Origin: Pecten maximus
Taxonomy: Eukaryota
Direction of reading: 5' to 3'
NCBI RefSeq assembly: GCF_902652985.1
Contig: NC_047016.1
Span: 50,344,001-50,408,000 of the forward strand
Length of the DNA stretch: 64,000 bases
The notes beneath the pieces are model-generated. The model saw only the letters and a program-made list of their open reading frames with translations. It did not search any database and had not been told where the DNA came from. Positions 24,944 to 48,878 of the stretch are shown piece by piece (positions within the stretch are counted from its first letter, which is position 1; each line of letters starts with the position of its first letter). Made by a program: the position numbers and the translations under genes.

Positions 24944-25016
24944 AAAAATGTGGAACGATTTTACGTGTCATCCTTGCGCAAGGCTTTGCTAATCTTCTAT
25001 GTATCGTTCCAATTTT
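24944..25016 (-). pseudogene. U6: 5'-truncated U6 snRNA pseudogene
   Basis: Reverse complement reads AAAATTGGAACGATACATAGAAGATTAGCAAAGCCTTGCGCAAGGATGACACGTAAAATCGTTCCACATTTTT, matching the U6 central and 3' region. The ACAGAGA box is mutated, there is an internal deletion and the 5' stem-loop is missing. Confidence 0.88.
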
Positions 25017-26640
25017 GATTTGAACCAACATCTACTGCACTTTATTTTTTGATAGAATCAACAGGCCATGTACAGTAAATAAATACACTAGACGAAATTC
25101 AGTCTCAATACTCAACACAAGGGGAAGTATGTTGTATAAAGGTCATTACCTTAAACACCTACGTACGCAAAATAATATCATACAAGTGTTGCGCCCAATT
25201 TCTTTGTTCAAGTATACATTGTTGTACTTTGTTGCAACTTGTACATCTCATTGACGTCTCGTTGTCTACCTGTGCCGCGTTGTGTCTACACTGTCTGACA
25301 CGAAGGATGCATATTGCAAGTTTGCAAAATGCAAAACAACATCAGACAATACCAGGTTTGGATATAATTCTATGGAAAACGATGAGTTACCAGACTTCAA
25401 CTTTCATTTCGTCAGTACATTCGTGATCGTAGTCGGGATCAGATGTAAAGGCAACGATAAGGACGGTGGTTTTGTCAAAGTATTGAAACCTACCAACTTC
25501 TACGAATAAACAAATGCGTTAGTTCTACACGATAGAGTATTTTTTTTTTTTTTTTTAATTAATTAAATCAGTATGATTCGTCTGGAACAAACTCTTTCAC
25601 AGTCGATCATGATTTCATCTTTTCCCTATGGATTAATTACGAAATCCAAGTTTTCAAATAGGGCGGTTATTTTTGGCTTATTATAGAAGATTGCAAGTGT
25701 CTTTCCGTCTAGTAGGCATACGATTTAAACTCGACGCCGTATCACCGCTACCTTTGATATCTTGACGCGTAATATTTACAAGCGTGTAAAACATTTCGGC
25801 GTGATGTTGTACAAATGCTTGGAATTTTTTTTTTATTCGCGCTACATTATATTAACAAAGAAAACAACCAAAGGTACCCTTTTGAAGAAAACCCGAATGA
25901 AACTATCTCATCTAACGAAACTTTTTTGATTAATTTGTTTGCTTATATATTTGCAGAAATAAAAGCTGTGATTATTTTAAAGCGTGATTTAGCGAAACGT
26001 ATAAGCATAAAATCTTTATATATGGAGAGTAAATTTTAGGATGAAAATGTATTTCTGATGGTTTTATCAAGGGGTAAAGATAGGTATAGATATTTGTTTC
26101 AGGAGCTGTCGATTCCAAATATGGATATAATGCTGAGCTTCATCATCTGAGATTACTACAAGGACGACAAATAATAACTATTGCCAATATGTATATATAC
26201 GAGACTGTCTATTGACATTGACAAAGACATTTCGGCGGATGCCTTAAACAAAGGGATTACCGGACACCCCTATCCACAATGTATATCAAAAGCTAACATG
26301 AAAAAGGTGGGATTATAGACATTGCCTGATAAAGTATGGTAATGTTAATAATTTGGTAATTCATAACAATTATACAGAGTAAGCCTGTTCTATATCAAAC
26401 AAAATAATTACTTACCAGAACAACATTCGTGTTGTATTTACATCATCCAAAGCCGCAGTTTTAATCGGTATGTCATTGCGTGATCTGGGAGTCTAGCTTG
26501 ACTGAGTGACAGTTACCTACTCTAAACATCCTATTACTGTGCGATCATGATATAACTGTAGTCCGACCACCTGTTCCAGCCACTTATCAAATATATCCCG
26601 TTTTCACTAACCTTCAGTTTCCTAACACTTGAAAAACAAT

Positions 26641-30060: not shown

Positions 30061-33000
30061 GTCAACAAAAGTAAGTAATGTATAAGTGGATATAGGTTGT
30101 TTCACTGTCGTTAAAACATAAATAAACGTTTATATAGGGATTGGATTTGTCTTTTATGTTAGCCATGCTTGTAATGGGGAAATTTCTCTAGGAATATAAT
30201 CTATGGGTCGCGGTAGAATATGTTCTGAGTAGAATTACTCCGTAAATGCATGGTTAACAAATGAGTTCCTGTAATATATTTTTATGTAGATCAATCCGCA
30301 TTTGTACATGTCATCGTAATCCTGTAAAAGTCGGTTACTAGTTGGAGGAATTAAACAGAGAGAACAGCCGATGATGACTCTTCACTTCAAGTTTAAACTT
30401 TCTTACGCTGTGACAAATAGTCCTGTTTTACGTGTGAAATAACCATAAATAACACAAACCTTTAGACATTTTATTAAACTGGTTTTTTTTTTAATATTAA
30501 CTTTTTTTCTTTATTAGAAAAATTACACTGTGTTTGTTCGTTGAAAATGTCATGGGTTTGGTAAAAGTAGTTCCCGTACCGTAACAATTTTATATACAAG
30601 TTCAAAGGTCAATGTGTCCATGCAAGTATGTTAAACAGATACATCTGTTGAATAGTGACAAAGCCTGGCAAGTGTAAATATACTGGTAGATGTTGACTTC
30701 TTATACTGTCTGCTTATACAAGATGCCTATTCAGATAAAAAATTATGTCCTATCACTGAACCTTCTCCGAAATTAAAATTGAGGTTTACAATATCACCCA
30801 ATTTTGCTACTTACACTTGTCATAGTTGTAACATGGACAGACTACAACAGATGGATTATACACTAAGAAATAGGAGTGCGCCAGGAGTCGAACTTAAAAC
30901 ATATTCATATCCATTGGTATGGAAAAAGAGAGACATAGATATTCAACAATTAATCGCTGTTATATGTATTTTACAAGCCGTTTACGAAAATGTACATTAT
31001 GGAATTAGCGAGTGAGAGCCCCCCTGTGCGGGGACATTGTTTATATTTCGAAGGCTGACCCCAAGGCCCCAACCTTGGCAGCCTTCCAATGTTTACATGT
31101 GCTGGGGAATTAATTGCTTGTGTGTAAAAAAAAACCCAAAAAAACATTATGGAATTAGCGGTAACAATCATTATTAAACTGGTTGTAGCATGACATCAAA
31201 ATGCGCAGTTAGCATCCATGCTTCGGCATAGGAACAGAAGATTTGTATATGTCTGTCTCAAGTCAAATCTAAAACATGTAAATATGAATAATATGTGCTC
31301 AATAAAGTACATTTGACATCGATATCACTATACAGAGTCACAGTTTATATTCTGATTGAAGGACTTGACAGTCCTTTGCTGGTCAAGTGCTGTCGATCAT
31401 CATGTGATCCGCGTCAACAAGGAAGCACGGCCTGTCAAACGGTACAATATACAATGTTTGTCAATATTCACAGTCAGTGGTGAGAATTGATGGTACAACC
31501 CCTATTTATATCACCCAAAGCCTAACTGAACTTTCTGTTTCGAGATAATCAGTAGATCACGCGCTGTTGTGAGCCACGCAGCAGATGTTTACGAGCGCCA
31601 ACTTAAAGGTAGGGGGGAGGGGGAGAGAAAAGGTATGGGAGCATCTGCACAATCATATGGTTTTTCTCCGGGTGCTGCGGTTTCCTCTCATAGTAAAACT
31701 CCTAGTGCACTCCTACTTGGCCAACAAGAGTGTTTAAATGGGCAATCCTTCGTTCGAACCCCAGATGTGTGTTGCACAGTAATTTAAAAGATTAATGAAT
31801 AAAAGATGCTTACACTCATATTTATTATCAACTGTGATGGAATAGATATCATATTTTTACAGAAAATCCGCAAAACTCTTCCGCTCTGTATCCGCATGGG
31901 AATAATCGACCACGCCTCCATCGAAAGGGTAAAGTTTATCACAGAATATACAGTGATATACAGTGGGTGTACGTTTTTTATTGTGATTATAAACACCAAT
32001 TATATAACCTCAATTACAAAGTCGCATAAATATGAGAATCGAAGGGCGCAAACACGTGAGCCGTTTTTACAAAAACTGATGTGTACATGAATGTAAATGA
32101 AGAAAAATGTATAAAGATAAAACAAATACACTGCATACTTGTAAAATCATTTATTGTGGTTCGATGAGGTATATATGTGATGTGTCAGCATGGTAACAAG
32201 CCTAACTTCGAGCAGAACTTCATTACAAACCTGTCAGTCTGTTGAGTCGACTATCATGCAGTATATCCCGCAGAAACTTTCCCGAAGCATTGCGAATTCC
32301 TCGTTCGACTCGACTGACGCTCTCTTTCATCTTTCCAACTAGTTGCCGATATTTATAAGAGTTTATATGGCGTTCGCTATCTTGTCGTGTCCTCATTTTC
32401 TTGCCGATTGACCTATATTAGCTAATCGCTAACTCGGGGAGCCGTTAACGCCATTTTCGTTTCTGTTCGTGAGCTTGTCTGCGCATGCTCGTATTGATAG
32501 TTGTTGGCGGCAATTAATTTTCGCACTTCGGATCGAAGTGACATTTTCAAAAACCTTTTATTTCTAAGAACTTTGGGTTATCTTCGGGCTTTGGGTGTTG
32601 TTTTACGGTAAAGTTTATAAATTTTACTAATTAAGAAAAATTCAAGATTCCCGTTTACTTTTGTTTTTATAGCATAAACTGATTTCAACGACGGAATGCC
32701 CCATTAATGTAATTGAGGCTTAGAAACAGTAGGATCCAAAACTGAATTAAGCTACATCATGCAGGCGTTCCTTTCTTCTATAACTTATCAGTAATGCTGA
32801 AATGTTGAATACCTTGGAGGTGACCAAGCTAACTTTAAAAAAAGGTCGAAAGAAAATGCCAAAATAAACATGAGGAGGTGCAATAGCCCAATTATTTAAT
32901 GAATTTAATAAGTTTAATTCTGAATTTCAAAAGAACGTCAAATACATAATAATTTAATTATGTATTATCTGAAATATGTCACTAATGAATTAAAACAGAC

Positions 33001-33541
33001 AGGTTACTGCAACCAGCAGTGTCGACTATCTGTGAAGTATACAAGAACATTATCCACCATAACAAGCCTTCTACTACCTCCGTCTAGGTCATAACTCGTA
33101 TTTTTTTTTATTATTATTATTATTCTATTTTATTTTAATGTCGAAAAATGTGTCTGGGATATGTTGAAAAACCTATTTATTTTTTGAATATGCATTAATT
33201 TGCAATATGCTTTCCATTTCCATCTGTTACCGGTACACGTACTTCGATAATATCATTGCAGTCATGAAAGGTGTATGTCAGTGGGAAAACTCCGATAAAT
33301 CAACAAAATAATATCTGGTTTAATAAATATTCAATTTGCCAGCCAAAGAATAATGTTATCTTTAAGGGTTTTTACTGTATTGAAAATTACCTCCCATAAA
33401 GTAGTCTTCACAAGCTTACTTCTATAACCTATATCAAAGTTCCATTTTATATGAACATAAGGGAAGAAAAAAAGAAAAGTGATCTATTTAACGTTAGCAA
33501 AGTTTTCAAAATTGATTATGTATAAAAAAAACACACACAAA

Positions 33542-33577
<36 letters not shown>

Positions 33578-34007
33578 AATTACTCGCCTCTTATGACATG
33601 CCGTGAAATAAAGTAGGTAATTCTTTCCACGGCCATTAAGCAGAAAGCAGACTTTTCTAAGACCAGGTTTTGGGTATTACGTAACTTTAGTATTTCCGAT
33701 ATTGAGTTAAATTTTTAAATTCTGCTTTTATGTTAATTATACGATCATATCAAGATGAAATAAAAAGTATCAGACAGAAAATAACAATGATTGTTATTAA
33801 ACATACGATTGAGGATTATCATGATAAAGGCCAAGAAGTTCGCTCTGTATACCTTGACATTAGCCCTGCAGGTAGGGCGTAAGAATAGTACCTGCTGCCC
33901 CGATTTCATGATTGTAAGAGGCGACTAAATTTGAGATTTGATCTTTTCTCTTCTTCATTTACAACTTTCTCCTTCCTAATGTCTCCTTTGACACTGTCTC
34001 GCCGACC

Positions 34008-34340
34008 TTTAGCTAAGCATTCGCCCCTGTGATGACTGCTTTGGGTTCTGTCCCATGGCCGAGACATGCATGTACCAGAGTCAATGAAAATGGTAGATGC
34101 AACTCCTGCTAAGCGCTCGGCATTTTGGGAGCGTGACGATTGGTTCGCCTATCGTCAGTATAATTTGACCGGGGCAGATGGTCTGCTGGGTGTCTTCGGC
34201 TTCTGCTTTAATGAAGTCGGAGACAAACACGAACATATCGCAGCCTCCCAAAACACCCACATTCACCACAGCCCTACCTCTCCCATAAATAGAAATGGCT
34301 TTATCTGTTGATAGGACGTTCACCAATCCAAACAAAAACC
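34008..34340 (+). mobile_element. SINE of a second family (Meta-SINE-like core); paralogous copies at ~45230-45562 and ~48170-48478
   Basis: Decayed tRNA head, core aaaatggtagatgcaactcctgctaagcgctcggcat…gtcagtataatttgaccggg, and a tail ctgttgataggacgtt…caaacaaaaa shared with the V-type SINE. The family name comes from recalled similarity, not a search. Confidence 0.6.
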
Positions 34341-34476
34341 ATGAATAATTTTTTTTCTGATCAAGTTGTACTCGTTGTCATATTAGTTACTTAAATAGTG
34401 TAAAGGGTTCACCCTTGTCTAACCCTCGATATTGATATCGCTTTAACAAAGCATCTTGCCTTACCTTAGGTGTTTA

Positions 34477-34695
34477 CTTTGGTTTGTTTTTGTTTAACGT
34501 CCTATTAACAGTCAGGGTCATTTAAGGACGTGCCAGGTTTTGGAGGTGGAGGAAAGCCGGAGTACCCGGAGAAAAACCACCGGCCAACGGTCAGTACCTG
34601 GCAACTGCCCCACGTAGGTTTCGAACTCGCAACCCAGAGGTGGAGGGCAAGTGATAAAGTGTCGGGACACCTTAACCACTCGGCCACCGGGGCCT
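34477..34695 (-). mobile_element. Full-length tRNA-derived SINE (V-domain-like)
   Basis: Minus strand GGCCCCGGTGGCCGAGTGGTTAAGG (A-box), GAGTTCGAAAC (B-box), GGTTTTTCTCCGGGTACTCCGGCTTTCCTCCAC core. 12-bp TSD cttaggtgttta at 34465-34476 and 34696-34707. Confidence 0.9.
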
Positions 34696-34712
34696 CTTAG
34701 GTGTTTAGGTGC

Positions 34713-35631
34713 TGTTATGTTACCATAATTACATTGTATCACAGGGTTAATTTGATTACAATATGATCCGGACATTACGGTCCGAGTTTTAGTATGATCC
34801 GGACATTGCGGTCCAAGCTTTAGTATGATCCGGACATTGCGGTCCGGACGTTAGTCGTACCCTTTGGCAATCTTAGAGGAAGTTTGCAATGGCGTGCTCC
34901 GGCACTGTACACATTTCATGTCAAAGGAAACTTTAGGTCCCCCACAGGGTGAGTTTATTCCCTGCCCATATCAATTCTTGCCGATCGAACATTTATTGCA
35001 TTGATTATATGATTGTCAACATTAGTCTGTAAAAGATATGATCTGTATGTGTGTTCGAAATGTCAGTCATATGAACTGTCTGTCATTCAGTGAAGCACAT
35101 GGTCCGTGCCATCTAGTCATGTTTAGGATCTATATATGTCAGTATTATTTCGTATATTAGTTTATTAATATGTCTTATGTAAATTCTACTCAGCGACAGT
35201 GTAGGAATAAGACATCAGACGAATTATAGTTGTATTTTGGTCAGAAAGCGATTAGGTCAATTCGTCCTATTATTACTTACCTTGGACAAAACGTCCTATT
35301 AGTCATTTGAGTTAATTATATCTATAAATGTGTTTTAAACTATTGTTGTTACTCTGTCCATCCATGAATACTCCAAAGATAGTGTATATATATCCAGCAA
35401 AGAAATCTAGTCAGTTTATTAAGTGATATTTGTGTTAAATATCCGATTATTGCTCAAAATCAGTTTTGTATTCGAATATCAGTGAAAGAAAGGCATATGT
35501 TAGACATAATGGTTTGCATAGTGACAGTGTGTACATCTGTATCATATTCTCATTGTGTTTTCATTTTCATATGTTGTAGTCTTTTACCTTCCTCCGGGGA
35601 GTTTTGTGGAATAAAGTCGTATAACATCACA
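34713..35631 (+). repeat. 5' LTR (919 bp)
   Basis: Begins TGTTATG, ends CATCACA. AATAAA at ~35610. Three ~31-bp internal repeats at 34762-34850. Confidence 0.96.
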
Positions 35632-35669
35632 GTAAAAGACCTGCGACTCAGACCTCAGGATCTGTAAAG

Positions 35670-38600
35670 ATGGATTCAATACATGAACAACGCACCAGAA
35701 ACCTGACACCAGGAGGAGAAACACTTTTCCTAAGCAGGGTAGAAGACTTCTGCAAAAGTTTGTCAAAACAAGGAGAGAGGATTAACGGATTAATCAGTCA
35801 GACCATGACCAGTATGGAAGAAGGTTTAATAGATGAGCTAGCTAAGAGCAGGACAGTCTATTTGGATATTTCGAATCAATTCATTGATTTCCTCCATAGG
35901 ACACGTACCATGGACAGTGCTAGGGAACTTTCTGCTCATGGCCTTATTCGTGAAAGTTTTCTGTCAAAGATTGATTTAGCTTTAGAGGCCACTCAGAAGT
36001 ATGTACCACCTAAAATAGAACACGAGGAATCAAAATCACCTAATGCTGGACACAAGACACCTTGCCATTCGTCGAAAGCTTCATCATGTTCATCTCAGTC
36101 GAGTCGCTCGCACAAGTCGTCTGCAAGTTACATATTAACGAAACAAAGATTGAAACATGAAAGGGCAAAGGTTCAACTAGAATTTATGAAGAAAGAGGCT
36201 CAAGTTCTGAAACAACAAGCAGAGGTTGATGTGAGTCTGAAATTGCTGCGGTCAGAAAGAAACTTGAAAGAGGCGGAGGCTGAGCTTGATGCAGTACATG
36301 ATCTTATTGAGGAAGAGAATGGATCTGTTGATTATGATATAAGGTCGACTAAAAAAGAAAGAACAGCTGCATTTGTGAATAGTGCAATTGATCATGTTGG
36401 TCGCGAGGTAATGCAACCAAGTCCTACACCTGGTGTGCTTCAACAACCAAGTCTGTCGCCTGGTATGCTTCAACAACCAAGTCTGTCGCCTGGTATGCTT
36501 CAACAACCAAGTCCTGCACCTGGTATGCTTCAACAACCAAGTCCTGCACCTGGTATGCTTCAACAACCAAGTTTGGCGCCTGGTATGCTTCAACAACCAA
36601 GTCTGTCACCTGGTATGCTTCAACAACCAAGTTTGTTGCCTGGTATGCTTCAACAACCAAGTCCTGCACCTGGTATGCTTCAACAACCAAGTCTGTCGCC
36701 TGGTATGCTTCAACAACCAAGTCCTGCACCTGGTATGCTTCAACAACCGAGTTTGTCGCCTGGTATGCTTCAACAACCAAGTCCTGCACCTTGTATGCTT
36801 CAACAACCAAGTCTGTTGCCTGGTATGCTTCAACAACCAAGTTCGTCACCTGGTATGCTTCAGCCAACAAATTCACCTGCATGTGGCATGCTTCGTCCAG
36901 AGGCCACCGAATTCCAACCAACATGCAGAGATACCAATGAACTCACAAAGTTTCTAATGAAAAGAGATTTATTATTGTCTAGATTCACACAGTTTTCGGA
37001 CGAACCACAACGTTACACATTGTGGAAAAGTAGTTTTAAGAATCTCATTAGGGAGCTTGAAGTCACTGCTACAGAAGAACTTGATCTTCTTGTCAGATGG
37101 TTAGGACCCGAGTCCACCCAACAAGCTTTGAGCCTCAGGGCTGCACACACTCATGATGAAAGATTAGCAATCATAAGGATTTGGGAGAGACTTGACAGTC
37201 GTTACGGCGCTCCAGAACTTGTTATACATTCCTTCAAGAAAAGGCTTGAGGTATTACCCAAATTAACATACAAAGATAATGTAAAGATGTATGAACTGTC
37301 AGACCTACTCATTGAGATGCAAGCCTTAAAGGAGAATGTCATGTACGCCACTTCCCTGGCCTACCTAGATTCTTCAGCTGGAATCAACCCCATAGTGGCC
37401 AAACTTCCAGCATTCATACAAAGGAAATGGACGGATACAGCGTTTAGATACAAGAAAGACCAAGGCGTCCTTTATCCACCATTCAACATTTTCACTGGCT
37501 TCATGAAGGGTATGACAGAACGATTGAACGATCCAGGTCTGCAGTTTGACCCTCAACAATCGACACAGGTCAAAGCCCAGGTTAACAGTGTTGGTAAACG
37601 GACCGGAAATAGAATGATGCTGTCTGCTAAGAAGACTGATGTAGAGAAACCAGTCCCTCCAGCTCATATTTGTCCTATTCATGGTGGAAGTGCCCGTCAT
37701 AGCTTGAAAGACTGTCGCTTATTCCTAGCCAAGACTGTGCTGGAAAGGAAAGAAGTGCTTAAAAAGAACGGTTATTGCTTTAAATGCTGTGAGGACAAAC
37801 ACCTAGCGAAAACCTGTAAAGTAGCTGTGAAGTGTGATATTTGTGGTGGTAGTCGTCACCCTACAGTACTCCATGAACAATTTATCTCGGAGAAGTCCCC
37901 ACCAGTCCATGGAGGGGAGTGTAGTCCTTCATCACCTCCCGGAAGAGAACCAAACTATCTTCAAGCTAGTAGCAGTTGCACACAAGTGTGTAAGGACTCC
38001 AGGGGATTCAGCAAATCATGTGCTAAAACAATTTTGGTCAAAGTCTATCCTAAAGGAGAGCCAGACAAATCCATCCGTCTCTACGCCATAATAGACGATC
38101 AAAGCAACATGTCGTTAGCCAGAACAGCCTTTTTCGACAGCTTTGGAGAAAATAGCCAATATACAGAATATACCATGGCTTCTTGTTCTGGACTTAATTC
38201 CTCCTCTGGAAGGAAGGCGCAAGGATACGTTGTGGAGTCAATGGATGGAGATTTTGCTCTTGATCTACCAGTCTTACTGGAATGTGACAATATCCCAAAT
38301 AACCGTAATGAAATACCTACCCCTGAGGCGGCTCACTTCCATTCTCATCTGCGGGACATCTCTCAACACCTTCGACCTCTCGATAGGAACGCAGATATTC
38401 TGATGTTGATAGGTCGTGACATGCCTGCAGCACACCACATCATGGATCAGAGGATAGGGCCCTCAGATGGACCATATGCGCAGCGCCTCAAGCTCGGATG
38501 GGTAGTTGTTGGTGAGGTGTGTCTTGGTAAAGTTCACCAGACATCCTACATCACTGCAAATAAGGTACACACCCTTGCCAATGGTCGTCCTTCATTATTG

Positions 38601-41600
38601 GAACCTTGTCCCAATTGCTTCGACTTCAAAGAAGACATTCCTAAGACAGATAACTTCCCCCTGTTTGTAAAGAATCCCCATGATGATAAACCTGGTCTTT
38701 CCTTGGAGGACAAAGAGTTTTTGCATGTGATGGACACTGGCTTCAGGAAAAATGATCATGGTCAGTGGGAAGCTCCTCTTCCATTAAAAACGGATCGTCC
38801 GCGACTGCCTGACAACAGGGCTCAGAGTCTACGAAGGGCAAGGACCTTGGATACAAGTCTCCGAAGAGACTCTCAGAAATGTTCCCATATGATGGAGTTC
38901 ATGTCTAAAGTGTTGGATAAGGGACACGCAGAAGTTGCTTCTGATCTTGACGATGAAGAAGAGCGTTGGTATTTGCCTCTCTTTGGAATTTACCATCCTA
39001 AAAAGCCAGATAAAATTCGTTGTGTTTTTGACTCTTCGGCTAAGGAAAATGGCCTGTCGCTAAACAGCGTGCTCATGACAGGTCCAGATCTTACTAACAG
39101 CCTTCTGGGTGTTTTACTCAGGTTTCGGAAAGACCCTATTGCTATCATGGCGGATGTAGAACAAATGTTCTACTGCTTCAAAGTAGTCCAGGAACACCGC
39201 AATTTTCTGAGATTCTTCTGGTACGCAGACAACTCTATTGCCAAGCCGTTGATCGAGTATCGAATGACTGCTCATGTCTTCGGGAATTCGCCGTCTCCAG
39301 CAGTTGCAACCTATGGTCTTAGAAAGGCAGCAGAGAATTCTGACGAGGACATTCGGAATTTTGTTACACAGAATTTTTATGTAGATGACGGACTAGCTTC
39401 CGCACCGAATGTGACTACCGCTGTATCACTCATTAAGAGAACCCAAAGGTGTCTACAGGAAAACGGTGGAATAAGACTTCACAAAGTTGCATCCAATTCA
39501 AGAGAGGTACTTGAAACCTTTGATCGTGAGGACTTGGCAGGAGATATCAGAGATCTCGATCTTTCAACAGACTGCCCACCAGTCCAGCGCAGTCTGGGAT
39601 TACTTTGGAATCTGGCCTCAGATTCATTTATCTTTAGTGCAGGAGTAACTGAAAAGGCTTACACCAAACGAGGTCTTTTATCAACCATCAACGGTATCTA
39701 TGACCCAATCGGATTTGCAGCTCCTGTTATTCTGCGGGGTAGGTTGCTCTTCAGAGATCTCGTTAAGTTGTCTTCTGAGTGGGATGAACCTCTGCCAGAG
39801 GAACGACGTCGGGAGTGGGAATCTTGGTACAGTTCCCTTGGACAGCTCCGCACTTGTTCTATCCCTCGACAGTATGTAATTGGTACAGTATACGAGGATT
39901 TAGAAAAGGAAGTACACATCTTCTCCGACGCCTCAAAGGACGCTGTCGCAGCTGTAGCTTACCTTCGGACCAAAGACACTAATAATCAGATCGGTACAAG
40001 CTTTATCTTTGGAAAAGCGAAAGTCGCACCACAGCATGGACATACGATTCCGCGCTTAGAGCTCTGCGCTGCTGTCTTGGCCACCGATCTTGGTCGCACC
40101 ATAAATGACCAACTGGACATTCCCGCGGAAAACATGCACTTTTACTCTGACAGTATGGTCGTGTTGGGATATTTACATAATCGTGTACGAAGATTTTACG
40201 TCTATGTCGGCAACCGTGTGGACAGGATACTTGGCTTTACAAAAGCTTCCCAGTGGAGTCACGTTTCTTCTGAAAAGAATCCTGCAGATGAAGGAACTAG
40301 ATGTGTAAATGCATGCGATCTACAAGAAAGTATGTGGCTGCAGGGATCAAGTGTTCTAAGGGAGGATACAGATCTTGAGACTCCAGGTTATCCTCTTGTT
40401 CAACCAGGCAAGGACGTTGAGGTGAGACAAGAAGTCAAAGTCCTCAAAACTTCCTGTGCAGCACCACAGGGTATAGGAGCTGAGCGAGTCAAACGTTTCT
40501 CTACGTGGAACTCATTGGTAAGAGGCATTGCTAACCTCAAGTCCCTTGCAATTGCTAGTAAAAATCGATCAACTACACATACCCGAAGAGTCACCACAGA
40601 TCTTCTTGAGAAATCCCGGATCTTTATACTCCAGGATGTTAAACAGCAAGTCTACTCTGAAGAACTACAATGTTTGAGGGAATCAAAAACTTTGCCTAGT
40701 AAGAGCAGCATCTCTGCTCTGACGCCAATCTTGGATCAAGATGGGATTCTTCGCGTTGGTGGTCGGCTCAACCGCTCAAACTACCCGCTGGAGGATCGGA
40801 ATCCTATCATAGTGCCTGGAAAGCATCATGTGGCTAGGCTCATTATCGAACATTTTCATTCAGTGGTGCGTCATCAGGGAAGGCATCTGACAGAAGGTGC
40901 TGTGCGATCTGCCGGATATTGGGTGACCGGTGCCAAGCGCCTAATTTCTTCTATTCTCCATGCTTGTGTTACGTGCTGTCGACTTCGAAGAAAACCAAGC
41001 CACCAACAAATGGCCGATCTTCCTCCTGACAGATTAGAGCCATGCGCTCCATTCACTTATGTAGGGGTAGATGTATTTGGACCCTGGAACATCACAACCA
41101 GACGTACTCGAGGAAGCGTATCCCAATCCAAGCGCTGGGCAGTGCTTTTTACCTGTCTAGTATCTAGAGCTGCACATATAGAGGTGATTGAGGAAATGTC
41201 TTCTTCCTCTTTCATAAATGCTTTACGCCGATTCATCTCCATTCGAGGACCTGTGAGAGAGTTTCGCTCCGACAATGGAACCAACTTTGTTGGGTGCACT
41301 CAAGATATGGGATTCCAGACGATTAGTGTGGATGAACCTAAACTGGCCAATTTCCTATTGGAGAACAGTACGGTTTGGCGCTTCAATCCCCCACATGCCT
41401 CCCACATGGGTGGTGTGTGGGAGCGCATGATTGGCACCGCTCGAAGGATCTTGGATTCCATGCTACTGGATATGAAAGGTAGAACTCTGACTCACGAAAT
41501 ACTTACCACTCTGATGGCAGAAGTAACAGCCATCATGAATTCAAGGCCCATTACTCCTGTGTCAACCGATCCTCAAGATCCCTCCGTGCTGTCGCCGTCT

Positions 41601-41981
41601 GCATTGCTCACCCAAAAGACTTCAAATTCATCCGTTAGTTGTGAACATCTCAGCCAAAAGGACTTATATCGGCATCAATGGAAATGCGTGCAAGTTTTGG
41701 CAGAAGAGTTTTGGAAAAAATGGCGGAGAGAGTACCTCGTAAACTTACAGTCGCGCAACAAGTGGCAACAGCAACAGAGAAATCTCAAAGAAGGGGACAT
41801 TGTGCTAATGAGAGATCGTAGTGTTGCTCGCATGGAATGGCCTCTTGGAATTATAAATCGTGTGTTCAAGAGTGACGATGAACTTGTGCGAAAAGTGGAG
41901 ATTCGCATTGTACGAGACAACAAAATCTCATATTTTGTCCGCCCGGTGACCGAAGTTGTATTTCTTACCAGTTCTGATTGA
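35670..41981 (+). CDS. BEL/Pao gag-pol polyprotein (Gag zinc knuckles, protease, RT, RNase H, integrase), 2103 aa
   Basis: Three Cys/His knuckles (CPIH..HSLKDC, CFKC..HLAKTC, CDIC..HPTVLH), protease AIIDDQS, RT FYVDD, RNase H HIFSDAS, TIPRLELCAA, integrase HQG..CVTC / GVDVFGP / SDNGTNF / GGVWER. Domain order PR-RT-RH-IN. Confidence 0.97.
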   Translation: MDSIHEQRTRNLTPGGETLFLSRVEDFCKSLSKQGERINGLISQTMTSMEEGLIDELAKSRTVYLDISNQFIDFLHRTRTMDSARELSAHGLIRESFLSKIDLALEATQKYVPPKIEHEESKSPNAGHKTPCHSSKASSCSSQSSRSHKSSASYILTKQRLKHERAKVQLEFMKKEAQVLKQQAEVDVSLKLLRSERNLKEAEAELDAVHDLIEEENGSVDYDIRSTKKERTAAFVNSAIDHVGREVMQPSPTPGVLQQPSLSPGMLQQPSLSPGMLQQPSPAPGMLQQPSPAPGMLQQPSLAPGMLQQPSLSPGMLQQPSLLPGMLQQPSPAPGMLQQPSLSPGMLQQPSPAPGMLQQPSLSPGMLQQPSPAPCMLQQPSLLPGMLQQPSSSPGMLQPTNSPACGMLRPEATEFQPTCRDTNELTKFLMKRDLLLSRFTQFSDEPQRYTLWKSSFKNLIRELEVTATEELDLLVRWLGPESTQQALSLRAAHTHDERLAIIRIWERLDSRYGAPELVIHSFKKRLEVLPKLTYKDNVKMYELSDLLIEMQALKENVMYATSLAYLDSSAGINPIVAKLPAFIQRKWTDTAFRYKKDQGVLYPPFNIFTGFMKGMTERLNDPGLQFDPQQSTQVKAQVNSVGKRTGNRMMLSAKKTDVEKPVPPAHICPIHGGSARHSLKDCRLFLAKTVLERKEVLKKNGYCFKCCEDKHLAKTCKVAVKCDICGGSRHPTVLHEQFISEKSPPVHGGECSPSSPPGREPNYLQASSSCTQVCKDSRGFSKSCAKTILVKVYPKGEPDKSIRLYAIIDDQSNMSLARTAFFDSFGENSQYTEYTMASCSGLNSSSGRKAQGYVVESMDGDFALDLPVLLECDNIPNNRNEIPTPEAAHFHSHLRDISQHLRPLDRNADILMLIGRDMPAAHHIMDQRIGPSDGPYAQRLKLGWVVVGEVCLGKVHQTSYITANKVHTLANGRPSLLEPCPNCFDFKEDIPKTDNFPLFVKNPHDDKPGLSLEDKEFLHVMDTGFRKNDHGQWEAPLPLKTDRPRLPDNRAQSLRRARTLDTSLRRDSQKCSHMMEFMSKVLDKGHAEVASDLDDEEERWYLPLFGIYHPKKPDKIRCVFDSSAKENGLSLNSVLMTGPDLTNSLLGVLLRFRKDPIAIMADVEQMFYCFKVVQEHRNFLRFFWYADNSIAKPLIEYRMTAHVFGNSPSPAVATYGLRKAAENSDEDIRNFVTQNFYVDDGLASAPNVTTAVSLIKRTQRCLQENGGIRLHKVASNSREVLETFDREDLAGDIRDLDLSTDCPPVQRSLGLLWNLASDSFIFSAGVTEKAYTKRGLLSTINGIYDPIGFAAPVILRGRLLFRDLVKLSSEWDEPLPEERRREWESWYSSLGQLRTCSIPRQYVIGTVYEDLEKEVHIFSDASKDAVAAVAYLRTKDTNNQIGTSFIFGKAKVAPQHGHTIPRLELCAAVLATDLGRTINDQLDIPAENMHFYSDSMVVLGYLHNRVRRFYVYVGNRVDRILGFTKASQWSHVSSEKNPADEGTRCVNACDLQESMWLQGSSVLREDTDLETPGYPLVQPGKDVEVRQEVKVLKTSCAAPQGIGAERVKRFSTWNSLVRGIANLKSLAIASKNRSTTHTRRVTTDLLEKSRIFILQDVKQQVYSEELQCLRESKTLPSKSSISALTPILDQDGILRVGGRLNRSNYPLEDRNPIIVPGKHHVARLIIEHFHSVVRHQGRHLTEGAVRSAGYWVTGAKRLISSILHACVTCCRLRRKPSHQQMADLPPDRLEPCAPFTYVGVDVFGPWNITTRRTRGSVSQSKRWAVLFTCLVSRAAHIEVIEEMSSSSFINALRRFISIRGPVREFRSDNGTNFVGCTQDMGFQTISVDEPKLANFLLENSTVWRFNPPHASHMGGVWERMIGTARRILDSMLLDMKGRTLTHEILTTLMAEVTAIMNSRPITPVSTDPQDPSVLSPSALLTQKTSNSSVSCEHLSQKDLYRHQWKCVQVLAEEFWKKWRREYLVNLQSRNKWQQQQRNLKEGDIVLMRDRSVARMEWPLGIINRVFKSDDELVRKVEIRIVRDNKISYFVRPVTEVVFLTSSD
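36411..36870 (+). repeat. In-frame 30-bp tandem repeat in gag (MLQQPS[LS/PA]PG x ~15)
   Basis: tggtatgcttcaacaaccaagtctgtcgcc-type units read directly. Confidence 0.95.
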
Positions 41982-42120
41982 CTTGGTTTATTTTAGTTAT
42001 GTAGGTGAAATTATTTCTGATGATAAGAAACTTTGAACATTTCTCATGTTTTCTGAGTGTCACAAATCTGAACAATCTGTTTGTGTTTAAGTAGTGATAT
42101 AGATCATATCAGGAGGGGAG

Positions 42121-43039
42121 TGTTATGTTACCATAATTACATTGTATCACAGGGTTAATTTGATTACAATATGATCCGGACATTACGGTCCGAGTTTTAG
42201 TATGATCCGGACATTGCGGTCCAAGCTTTAGTATGATCCGGACATTGCGGTCCGGACGTTAGTCGTACCCTTTGGCAATCTTAGAGGAAGTTTGCAATGG
42301 CGTGCTCCGGCACTGTACACATTTCATGTCAAAGGAAACTTTAGATCCCCCACATGGTGAGTTTATTCCCTGCCCATATCAATTCTTGCCGATCGAACAT
42401 TTATTGCATTGATTATATGATTGTCAACATTAGTCTGTAAAAGATATGATCTGTATGTGTGTTCGAAATGTCAGTCATATGAACTGTCTGTCATTCAGTG
42501 AAGCACATGGTCCGTGCCATCTAGTCATGTTTAGGATCTATATATGTCAGTATTATTTCGTATATTAGTTTATTAATATGTCTTATGTAAATTCTACTCA
42601 GAGACAGTGTAGGAATAAGACATCAGACGAATTATAGTTGTATTTTGGTCAGAAAGCGATTAGGTCAATTCGTCCTATTATTACTTACCTTGGACAAAAC
42701 GTCCTATTAGTCATTTGAGTTAATTATATCTATAAATGTGTTTTAAACTATTGTTGTTACTCTGTCCATCCATGAATACTCCAAAGATAGTGTATATATA
42801 TCCAGCAAAGAAATCTAGTCAGTTTATTAAGTGATATTTGTGTTAAATATCCGATTATTGCTCAAAATCAGTTTTGTATTCGAATATCAGTGAAAGAAAG
42901 GCATATGTTAGACATAATGGTTTGCATAGTGACAGTGTGTACATCTGTATCATATTCTCATTGTGTTTTCATTTTCATATGTTGTAGTCTTTTACCTTCC
43001 TCCGGGGAGTTTTGTGGAATAAAGTCGTATAACATCACA
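42121..43039 (+). repeat. 3' LTR (919 bp)
   Basis: Matches the 5' LTR. By eye I found 3 substitutions (34937/42345, 34947/42355, 35194/42602). Confidence 0.96.
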
Positions 43040-45699
43040 GGTGCTGCGGTTTCCTCTCATGGTTAAACTCGAAGTGCACTTCCACTTGGTCAACAAGAGT
43101 GATTAAAGGGGCAATCCTTCGTTCGAACCCCAGATGTGTGTTGCACAGTAATTTAAAAGATTAATGAATAAAAGAAGCTTACACTCATATTTATTATCAA
43201 CTGTGATGGAATAGATATCATATTTGTACAGAAAATCCGCAAAACTCTGCCACTCTGCATCCGCATGGGAATAATTGACCACGCCTCCATCGATAGGGTA
43301 AAGTTTATCACAGAATATACAGTGATATACAGTGGGTGTACGGTTTTTGTGAGCGGCAGCCGTGTTTACAAAAACTGATGTGTACATGAATGTAAATGAA
43401 GGAAATGTCTAAAGATAAAACAAATACACTGCATACTTGTAAAATCATTTATTGTGGTTCGATGAGGTATATATGTGATGTGTCAGCATGGTAACAAGCC
43501 TAACTTCGAGCAGAACTTCATTACAAACCTGTCAGTCTGTTGAGTCGACTATCATGCAGTATATCCCGCAGAAACTTTCCCGAAGCATTGCGAATTCCTC
43601 GTTCGACTCGACTGACGCTCTCTTTCATCTTTCCAACTAGTTGCCGATATTTATAAGAGTTTATATGGCGTTCGCTATCTTGTCGTGTCCTCATTTTCTT
43701 GCCGATTGACCTATATTAGCTAATCGCTAACTCGGGGAGCCGTTAACGCCATTTTCGTTTCTGTTCGTGAGCTTGTCTGCGCATGCTCGTATTGATAGTT
43801 GTTGGCGGCAATTAATTTTCGCACTTCCGATCGAAGTGACATTTTCAAAAACCTTTTATTTCTAAAAACTTTGGGTTATCTTCGGGCTTTGGGTGTTGTA
43901 TTACGGTAAAGTTTATAACTTTTACTAATTAAGAAAAATTCAAGATTCCCGTTTACTTTTGTTTTTATAGCATAAACTGATTTCATCGACGGAATGCCCC
44001 ATCAATATAATTGAGGCTTAGAAACAGTAGGATCCAAAACTGAATTAAGCTACATCATGCAGGCGTTCCTTTCTTCTATAACTCATCAGCACTGCTGAAA
44101 TGTTGAATACCTTGGAGGCGACCAAGCTAACTTTTAAAAGAAAAGTCGAAAGGAGGTGCAATAGCCCAATTATTTAATGAATTTAATAAGTTTAAATTCT
44201 GAATTTCAAAAGAACGTCAAATACATAATAATCTAATTATGTATTATCTGAAATATGTCACTAATGAATTAAAACAGACAGGTTACGGCAACCAGCAGTG
44301 TCGACTATCTGTGAAGTATACAAGAACATTATCCACCATAACAAGCCTTCTACTACCTCCATCTAGGTCATAGCTCGTATTTTTATTATTATTATTATTA
44401 TTCTATTTTCTTTTAATGTCGAAAAATGTGTCTGGGATATGTTGAAAAACCTATTTATTTTTTGAATATGCATTAATTTGCAATATGCTTTCCATTTCCA
44501 TCTGTTACCGGTACACGTACTCCGATAGATCAACAAAATAATATCTGGTTTTATAAATATTCAATTTGCCAGCCAAAGAATAATGTTATCTTTAAGGGTT
44601 TTTACTGTATTGAAAATTACCTCCCATAAAGTAGTCTTCACAAGCTTACTTCTATAACCTATATCAAAGTTCCATTTTATATGAACATAAGGGAAGAAAA
44701 AAAGAAAAGTGATCTATTTAACGTTAACAAAGTTTTCAAAATTGATTATGTATAAAAAAAACACACACAAAAACAATATATATATATATATATAAAAAAA
44801 AATTACTCGCCTCTTATGACATGCCGTGAAATAAAGTAGGTAATTCTTTCCACGGCCATTAAGCAGAAAGCAGACTTTTCTAAGACCAGGTTTTGGGTAT
44901 TACGTAACTTTAGTATTTCCGATATTGAGTTAAATTTTTAAATTCTGCTTTTATGTTAATTATACGATCATATCAAGATGAAATAAAAAGTATCAGACAG
45001 AAAATAACAATGATTGTTATTAAACATACGATTGAGGATTATCATGATAAAGGCCAAGAAGTTCGCTCTGTATACCTTGACATTAGCCCTGCAGGTAGGG
45101 CGTAAGAATAGTACCTGCTGCCCCGATTTCATGATTGTAAGAGGCGACTAAATTTGAGATTTGATCTTTTCTCTTCTTCATTTACAACTTTCTCCTTCCT
45201 AATGTCTCCTTTGACACTGTCTCGCCGACCTTTAGCTAAGCATTCGCCCCTGTGATGACTGCTTTGGGTTCTGTCCCATGGCCGAGACATGCATGTACCA
45301 GAGTCAATGAAAATGGTAGATGCAACTCCTGCTAAGCGCTCGACATTTTGGGAGCGTGACGATTGGTTCGCCTATCGTCAGTATAATTTGACCGGGGCAG
45401 ATGGTCTGCTGGGTGTCTTCGGCTTCTGCTTTAATGAAGTCGGAGACAAACACGAACATATCGCAGCCTCCCAAAACACCCACATTCACCACAGCCATAC
45501 CTCTCCCATAAATAGAAATGGCTTTATCTGTTGATAGGACGTTCACCAATCCAAACAAAAACCCTGAATAATTTTTTTTCTGATCAAGTTGTACTCGTTG
45601 TCATATTAGTTACTTAAATAATGTAAAGGGTTCACCCTTGTCTAACCCTCGATATTGATATCGCTTTAACAAAGCATCTTGCCTTACCTTAGGTGTTTA

Positions 45700-45918
45700 C
45701 TTTGGTTTGTTTTTGTTTAACGTCCTATTAACAGTCAGGGTCATTTAAGGACGTGCCAGGTTTTGGAGGTGGAGGAAAGCCGGAGTACCCGGAGAAAAAC
45801 CACCGGCCAACGGTCAGTACCTGGCACCTGCCCCACGTAGGTTTCGAACTCGCAACCCAGAGGTGGAGGGCAAGTGATAAAGTGTCGGGACACCTTAACC
45901 ACTCGGCCACCGGGGCCT
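45700..45918 (-). mobile_element. V-type SINE, duplicated copy
   Basis: Near-identical to 34477-34695, with the same TSD. Confidence 0.88.
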
Positions 45919-48658
45919 CTTAGGTGTTTAGGTGCTGCGGTTTCCTCTCATGGTTAAACTCGAAGTGCACTTCCACTTGGTCAACAAGATTGATTAAAGG
46001 GGCAATCCTTCGTTCGAACCCCAGATGTGTGTTGCACAGTAATTTAAAAGATTAATGAATAAAAGAAGCTTACACTCATATTTATTATCAACTGTGATGG
46101 AATAGATATCATATTTGTACAGAAAATCCGCAAAACTCTGCCACTCTGCATCCGCATGGGAATAATTGACCACGCCTCCATCGATAGGGTAAAGTTTATC
46201 ACAGAATATACAGTGATATACAGTGGGTGTACGGTTTTTGTGAGCGGCAGCCGTGTTTACAAAAACTGATGTGTACATGAATGTAAATGAAGGAAATGTC
46301 TAAAGATAAAACAAATACACTGCATACTTGTAAAATCATTTATTGTGGTTCGATGAGGTATATATGTGATGTGTCAGCATGGTAACAAGCCTAACTTCGA
46401 GCAGAACTTCATTACAAACCTGTCAGTCTGTTGATTCGACTATCATGCAGTATATCCCGGAGAACTTTCCAGAAGCATTGCGAATTCCTCGTTTCGACTC
46501 GACTGACGCTCTCTTTCATCTTTCCAACTAGTTGCCGATATTTATAAGAGTTTATATGGCGTTCGCTATCTTGTCGTGTCCTCATTATCTTGTCGATTGA
46601 CCCATTAGGTAAACGCTAACTCAGGGAGCCGTTTACGCCATTTTTGTTTCTGTTCGTGAACTTGTCTGCGCATGCTCGTATTGATAGTTGTTGGCGGCAA
46701 TTAATTTTCGCACTTCGGATCGAAGTGACATTTTCAAAAACCTTTTATTTCTAAAAACTTTGGGTTATCTTCGGGCTTTGGGCGTTGTATTACGGTAAAG
46801 TTTATAACTTACTAATTAAGAAAAATTCAAGATTCCCGTTTACTTTTGTTTTTATAGCATAAACTGATTTCAACGATGGAATGCCCCATTAATATAATTG
46901 AGGCTTAGAAACAGTAGGATCCAAAACTGAATTAAGCTGCATCATGCAGGCGTTCCTTTCTTCTATAACTTATCAGTAATGCTGAAATGTTGAATACCTT
47001 GGAGGTGACCAAGCTAACTTTAAAAAAAGGTCGAAAGAAAATGCCAAAATAAACATGAGGAGGTGCAATAGCCCAATTATTTAATGAATTTAATAAGTTT
47101 AAATTCTGAATTTCAAAAGAACGTCAAATACATAATAATTTAATTATGTATTATCTGAAATATGTCACTAATGAATTAAAACAGACAGGTTACTGCAACC
47201 AGCAGTGTCGACTATCTGTGAAGTATACAAGACACGTTATCCACCATAACAAGCCTTCCACTACCTCCATCTAGGTCATAACTCGTATTTTTATTATTAT
47301 TATTATTATTATTATTCTATTTTATTTTAATGTCGGAAAATGTGTCTGGGATATGTTTAAAAACCTATTTATTTTTTGAATATGCATTAATGTGCAATAT
47401 GCTTTCCATTTCCATCTGTTACCGGTACACGTACTCCGATAGATCAACAAAATAATATCTGGTTTTATAAATATTCAATTTGCCAGCCAAAGAATAATGT
47501 TATCTTTAAGGGTTTTTACTGTATTGAAAATTACCTCCCATAAAGTAGTCTTCACAAGCTTACTTCTATAACCTATATCAAAGTTCCATTTTATATGAAC
47601 ATAAGGGAAGAAAAAAAGAAAAGTGATCTATTTAACGTTAACAAAGTTTTCAAAATTGATTATGTATAAAAAAAACACACACACTAAAACAATATATATA
47701 TATATAAAAAAAAAAAATTACTCGCCTCTTATGACATGCCGTGAAATAAAGTAGGTAATTCTTTCCAAGGCCATTAAGCAGAAGGCTGACTTTTCTAAGA
47801 CCAGGTTTTGGGTATTACGTAACTTTAGAATTTCCGATATTGAGTTAAATTTTTAAATTCTGCTTTTATTTTAATTATACGATCAATTCAACCTTTGTCA
47901 TCAGTGAACTTATCAAGATGAAATAAAAAGTATCAGACAGAAAATAACAATGATTGTTATTAAACATACGATTGAGGATTATCCTGATAAAGGCCAAGAA
48001 GTTCGCTCTGTATATCTTGACATTAGCCCTGCAGGTAGGGCGTAAGAATAGTACCTGCTGCCCCGATTTCATGATTGTAAGAGGCGACTAAATTTGAGAT
48101 TTTATCTTTTCTCTTCTTTCTTTACAACTTTCTCCTTCCTAATGTCTCCTTTGACACTGCTTCGCCGACCTTTAGTTAAGCATTCGCCCCTGTGATGACG
48201 TCTTTGGGTTCTGTCCTATGGTCGAGACATGCATGATGCAACTTCTGCTTAGCGCTCGGCATTTTGGGAGCGGGACGATTGGTTCGCCCATCGTCAGTAT
48301 AATTGACCGGGGCAGATGGTCTGCTGGGTGTCTTCGGCTTCTGCTTTAATGAAGTCGGAGACAAACACGAACATATCGCAGCCTCCCAAAACACCCACAT
48401 TCACCACAGCCATACCTCTCCCATAAATAGAAATGGCTTTATCTGTTAATAGGACGTTCACCAATCCAAACAAAAACCCTGAATAATTTTTTTTCTGATC
48501 AAGTTGTACTCGTTGTCATATTAGTTACTTAAATAGTGTAAAGGGTTCACCCTTGTCTAACCCTCGATATTGATATCGCTTTAACAAAGACTTTGATACC
48601 CGTTTAATTAGCCGCGTGCATATCAGTGAAGGTCATCTTGCCTTACCTTAGGTGTTTA

Positions 48659-48878
48659 GTTTGGTTTGTTTTTGTTTAACGTCCTATTAACAGTCAGGGT
48701 CATTTAAGGACGTGCCAGGTTTGGGAGGTGGAGGAAAGCCGGAGTACCCAGAGGAAAAACCACCGGCCTACGGTCAGTACCTGGCAACTGCCCCACGTAG
48801 GTTTCGAACTCGCAACCCAGAGGTGGAGGGCTAGTGTTAAAGTGTCCGGACGCCTTAACCACTCGGCCACCGGGGCCT
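48659..48878 (-). mobile_element. V-type SINE, duplicated copy
   Basis: Near-identical to 34477-34695, with the same TSD. Confidence 0.88.

Follow-up and report, generated by a model that had tools for sequence, protein, structure and literature searches.

A BEL/Pao retrotransposon of Pecten maximus with a primer site complementary to a predicted splice junction inside its own LTR

We identified an intact BEL/Pao retrotransposon of Pecten maximus that has no tRNA primer site. Instead, the 12 nt that directly follow its 5′ LTR are complementary to an exon junction that would be formed only when a predicted intron inside the LTR is spliced out. The same architecture was observed in many relatives in molluscs, a brachiopod, a nemertean and a crustacean, which points to an undescribed, splicing-dependent way of starting reverse transcription. 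The interpretation rests on comparative evidence; the contigs of RNA-type runs gave no direct support in this family, and the transcription start and the priming step itself are inferred.

The element lies in a window of 64,000 nt (NCBI RefSeq assembly GCF_902652985.1, contig NC_047016.1, positions 50,344,001 to 50,408,000 of the forward strand), and all positions below refer to this window unless stated otherwise. Its parts are as follows.
34708-34712 (+): 5′ target-site duplication (TSD), GGTGC, identical to the 5-mer at 43040-43044.
34713-35631 (+): 5′ LTR, 919 nt, TG..CA, 99.7% identical to 42121-43039; the same end is seen in 9 genomic LTR copies.
34763-34855 (+): three 31-nt tandem repeats carrying TCCGGA motifs, a probable U3 enhancer region; the function is inferred, and TCCGGA-type motifs recur near the LTR start in sister families.
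34885-34948 (+): putative exon 1, from the R start to the donor; only the 3′ boundary, 34948, is supported, whereas the 5′ boundary is a guess by analogy.
34949-35579 (+): predicted GT-AG intron inside the LTR, 631 nt, with the donor GTGAGT (the only perfect GTRAGT site in this LTR), a branch-like CTCAT at 35549-35553, a T-rich tract and AG at 35578-35579.
35580-35631 (+): exon 2 (functional R/U5), the first 8 nt of which are the 3′ part of the proposed primer; a conserved palindromic CCGG block follows, and AATAAA lies at 35610-35615.
35632-35643 (+): proposed primer binding site, 12 nt complementary to the predicted exon 1/exon 2 junction.
35670-41981 (+): single gag-pol ORF, 2103 aa (Pao peptidase A17, integrase core, DUF5641).
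42109-42120 (+): polypurine tract (PPT) abutting the 3′ LTR.
42121-43039 (+): 3′ LTR, intron retained, with two derived substitutions in the exon-1 end (42345, 42355).
43040-43044 (+): 3′ target-site duplication.

The assignment to BEL/Pao (Semotivirus) is based on the Pao-type peptidase (PF05380, E 3e-48), rve and DUF5641 in the polyprotein, together with the LTR pair, the TSD and the PPT. All homologues carry PF05380. About 20 in-frame tandem copies of a 30-nt unit (10-aa repeats) lie inside the gag part of the ORF, at 36324-36933. The three genomic copies of the element have open frames of different length (2118, 2098 and 2076 aa), possibly from variation in repeat number. Two further full copies exist, at G000:C2:50623820-50632003 (-) and C450:298698-306889 (-) (G000 and the C numbers are our labels for the genome and its contigs). 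One lies only 245 kb away on the same contig in inverted orientation and one is on a small contig, and they may be a segmental duplication and a haplotig rather than separate insertions. The window element is inserted into a ~2.9-kb tandemly repeated unit (31670-34694, 43039-45917, 45930-48877), and the unit interrupted by the insertion resumes at the 3′ TSD.

The sequence features described in the initial annotation were confirmed. The 38-nt leader between the LTR and the ATG at 35670 contains no TGG. The 9-mer 35579-35587 is the exact reverse complement of 35632-35640, and GTGAGT starts at 34949, after an exon end reading CAGG, which complements 35640-35643. Joining 34948 to 35580 would therefore give a 12-nt perfect complement of 35632-35643, as verified position by position. 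However, the LTR does not start at 34931, as initially proposed, but at 34713, 218 nt earlier, so that the donor lies 236 nt inside the LTR. The 3′ LTR differs from the 5′ LTR at only 3 sites, two of which (34937 G/A, 34947 G/T) fall in motifs invoked by the initial annotation (AGGTC at 34935-34939 and the CAGG exon end). The other 8 LTR copies of the family all carry the 5′-LTR state, so the 3′-LTR state is derived. A second helix, proposed between AGGTC and GACCT (35651-35655), was at chance level in 13 of 17 families and is not supported. We must also note that a 9-mer complement somewhere in an LTR is not unusual in itself, as 8-9-mers of this kind are common in 1.4 kb. What exceeds chance is the fixed position and the covariation across families.

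Copies within the family are at least 95% identical and were uninformative for covariation. A search of the genome with the gag N-terminus found many diverged BEL/Pao families, and all interpretable ones share one architecture but have different sequences. A pyrimidine tract and AG are followed by 6-8 nt that are the reverse complement of the first bases after the LTR. A short exon-2-like stretch comes next, usually with AATAAA, the LTR ends in CA or TA, and the site is followed by gag within 17-161 nt. The LTR ends were confirmed from LTR pairs, solo LTRs or copy comparisons. Each LTR also holds a donor-like GT, mostly GTRAGT, which lies 149-242 nt from the LTR start in the LTRs whose start was mapped. 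In many families, including the window (35586-35601), a conserved C/T-rich block ending in a CCGG-centred palindrome directly follows the primer segment, although the LTRs are otherwise unalignable. This block could be a dimerisation or recognition element.

We tabulated 19 related families, 15 from this genome plus Haliotis, Lingula, Tubulanus and one unnamed assembly. All 19 acceptors end in AG, and the 16 nt before the AG are 73% pyrimidine, against 53% for the LTRs overall. In 17 of 19 families, the 3-7 nt before a donor-like GT extend the complementarity to 9-15 nt in total. When the extensions were swapped among families, the mean was 3.5 and the maximum 11, and 0 of 3000 permutations reached 17. 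Of 7 perfect GTRAGT sites in 8 LTRs, 4 have an extension of at least 3 nt. The paired states differ widely between families (CAGG/CCTG, GGA/TCC, AGA/TCT, GGT/ACC, TAAT/ATTA, CACGTT/AACGTG, GTACAGT/ACTGTAC and others), so the signal is not one inherited sequence. Two families lack a matching donor, L044 with no match and L031 with 2 nt (L numbers denote our loci and families). We have no explanation for why the complementarity reaches only 3-7 nt into exon 1.

The architecture was found in Haliotis cracherodii and Lingula anatina, in Tubulanus polymorphus with a 15-nt complement, and in an ENA assembly. Four further loci from other species fit as well, including Mizuhopecten yessoensis, the crustacean Oratosquilla oratoria, and an ENA and a JGI contig. 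In Mizuhopecten, the closest relative, both the exon-1 end and the exon-2 start differ from the window, and the site has changed to match, giving 13 nt. The donor block (around 34937-34962 in the window) and the exon-2 start are the only well-conserved parts of its LTR. The Littorina (L057) and Priapulus (L059) loci were rearranged and could not be interpreted. A degenerate closest relative (L018/L021, G000:C11:16521464-16524952) has a sequence homologous to window 34830-34926 joined two bases before the gag ATG, whereas the rest of the LTR and the primer site are missing; this single locus could be either a deletion or a processed copy.

Evidence that such an intron is removed in vivo comes from one sister family. 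A solo LTR on contig C13 is 1008 nt long, has its own TSD, and contains a 744-nt GT..AG segment. A full-length element on contig C11, with a 2044-aa ORF, the TSD CGTAC and a PPT, has two 263-nt LTRs that equal the C13 LTR minus exactly that segment. An identical precise loss in both LTRs of an integrated copy is what reverse transcription of a spliced template produces. The natural intronless leader of this copy folds with the junction paired to the site (13+4 bp). In addition, a Logan contig from another organism, of unknown library type, carries an exon-1-like end fused directly to the exon-2 start, with a 12-nt complement. Nevertheless, the intronless copy proves that the splice sites work, but not that the 5′ copy is spliced or that the junction primes. 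No intronless LTR exists among the 9 LTRs of the window family or the 18 of the L023 family.

For the window family, contigs of four RNA-type runs were compared with 34300-37300. The LTR was covered without a break and was joined upstream to the 3′ end of pol, which is the 3′ LTR context, and one contig ran unspliced from the LTR into gag. No 34948^35580 joint appeared. However, depth was strongly 3′-biased, the exon-2 words are shared by both LTR contexts, and assembled contigs drop minor forms and do not reveal starts or ends, so that the result neither shows nor excludes a spliced 5′ form. In the same runs, a ~210-nt stretch just upstream of the element (34478-34689) had word depths of 10^4-10^6 with many different flanks, indicating a very abundant repeat or small-RNA-like sequence, in which Rfam and ARAGORN find nothing.

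We consider it likely, although not proven, that this is a self-priming BEL/Pao retrotransposon whose primer exists only after splicing. In this model, transcription starts in the 5′ LTR upstream of 34948, by inference roughly 35-65 nt upstream. The start is inferred from a homology boundary 64 nt before the donor in a sister family and from the 34-nt start of the Logan contig. The boundary is seen between two LTR variants, L043 (G000:C17:14896970-14898331, minus) versus L061 (on C13) and L041 (on C11), which share exon 1, intron and exon 2 but carry unrelated U3 modules. The 178-nt U3 module of L043 also occurs elsewhere without the rest, which suggests U3 swapping at the U3/R border. The spliceosome would then remove 34949-35579, joining the exon end CAGG to an 8-nt exon start, and the 12-nt junction would pair with 35632-35643, either in cis, forming a hairpin with a 44-nt loop, or in trans, with a co-packaged RNA. 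By analogy with Tf1, the RNase H of the element would cut right after the paired segment, and the new 3′ OH would prime minus-strand DNA. The short strong-stop DNA (the rest of exon 2, including AATAAA) would transfer to the exon-2 copy in the 3′ LTR and copy the unspliced intron of that LTR, so that the full LTR is rebuilt at both ends. In consequence, the effective R is only exon 2 downstream of the primer, and only the splicing state of the 3′ LTR decides whether the progeny keep the intron, which fits the rarity of intronless copies. The proposal in the initial annotation, that the site pairs with a junction made by splicing inside the LTR and that the 3′ LTR must keep the intron, is supported.

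Among the alternatives, a purely structural or regulatory role of the helix, for example as a splint or mask controlling LTR-intron splicing, translation or packaging, cannot be excluded but seems unlikely. Any selected pairing between the junction and the leader would produce the same covariation, and in the window the unspliced acceptor region can also pair with the leader, forming the 9 bp plus a bulged, G.U-containing extension (z -1.9). Families with other extensions cannot do this. Moreover, the complementarity begins at the very first base after the LTR in all families, which is where the 3′ end of a primer must sit. No other primer site exists in leaders as short as 17-38 nt, and the sites differ between families, so no shared host primer fits.

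Slightly less probable is Tf1-like self-priming without splicing, in which transcription starts at or next to the AG at 35578-35579, the first 8-9 nt of the unspliced RNA fold back on the site, and the upstream GT..AG intron sits in U3 for another reason. The 9-nt complement that exists without splicing, the loose resemblance of the sequences around the AG to an initiator in several families, the helix in the unspliced fold and the absence of a spliced contig in the four runs agree with this view. However, it does not explain why the 3-7 nt before a distant, conserved donor covary with the bases following the 8-nt core in 17 of 19 families and in Mizuhopecten, or why every family has a pyrimidine tract plus AG exactly there, and the Logan contig and the C11 element carry exon 1 joined to exon 2. 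Although some copia and Ty5-type elements may use internal tRNA segments, a host tRNA fragment or other small RNA is excluded for practical purposes, since the leader has no TGG, the window holds no tRNA gene (a U6 snRNA match at 24944-25035 (-), 61 bits against a gathering score of 44, is unrelated to the element), exact genome matches to the 18-mer at the site are only the 3 element copies, near-matches number 7 against 22 for the reversed control, and the site tracks the LTR of each family.

It is also possible, and in our view somewhat more likely than not, that a widespread protostome lineage of BEL/Pao retrotransposons has replaced the tRNA primer with one that the spliceosome assembles from two distant parts of the element's own LTR. 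Because the LTR is present twice in the RNA, the 5′ copy could be spliced to make the primer and a short leader, while the unspliced 3′ copy passes the intron on. This would make it an LTR retroelement that is both spliced and intron-inheriting, with reverse transcription dependent on splicing. Only tRNA priming, half-tRNA priming and Tf1-type self-priming are established for LTR elements, and a primer created by splicing would be a further solution, linking reverse transcription to the host spliceosome. It would also explain how an LTR element can carry an intron across generations, which bears on how hosts tell intron-containing genes from intronless retroelements. In practice, annotation pipelines that search for tRNA-type sites will fail on this whole lineage, and LTR-internal introns will confuse gene models. 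We found no earlier description of self-priming or of an LTR intron in BEL/Pao elements in the openly accessible literature, in which the BEL/Pao surveys do not discuss primer sites at all.

Self-priming itself is established for Tf1, Tf2 and Tj1 and proposed for the sushi group of Ty3/gypsy elements (PMC4600332 and the Levin 1995-1998 papers it cites). As in those elements, there is no tRNA primer, an 11-nt-scale site next to the 5′ LTR is complementary to the element's own upstream RNA, a fold-back hairpin would form, and the primer would have to be freed by a cut at the end of the duplex. However, our element belongs to a different superfamily, as shown by its Pao peptidase and DUF5641 architecture. 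In Tf1 the complement is the contiguous extreme 5′ end of the mRNA (the first ~11 nt), whereas here it is split in the DNA by an 87-802-nt intron, exists only after splicing, and probably lies 35-65 nt from the RNA 5′ end; spliced-form copies carry at least 34-64 nt upstream of the junction. Deltaretroviruses and foamy viruses likewise appear to have a 5′ splice site inside the LTR, present in both LTR copies of the RNA, but with the acceptor outside the LTR, spliced RNAs that are subgenomic mRNAs, and tRNA priming. Penelope-like elements (Arkhipova et al. 2003) probably also inherit a spliceosomal intron in a terminally repeated region despite an RNA intermediate, but they are a different class that uses target-primed reverse transcription, with no priming role for the exon junction. 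Finally, the internal complementary region of DIRS1 (PMC3601003) is also complementary to two LTR segments that are not adjacent in the DNA, but it bridges the terminal repeat ends to complete the cDNA, and is neither a splice junction nor located at the primer position.
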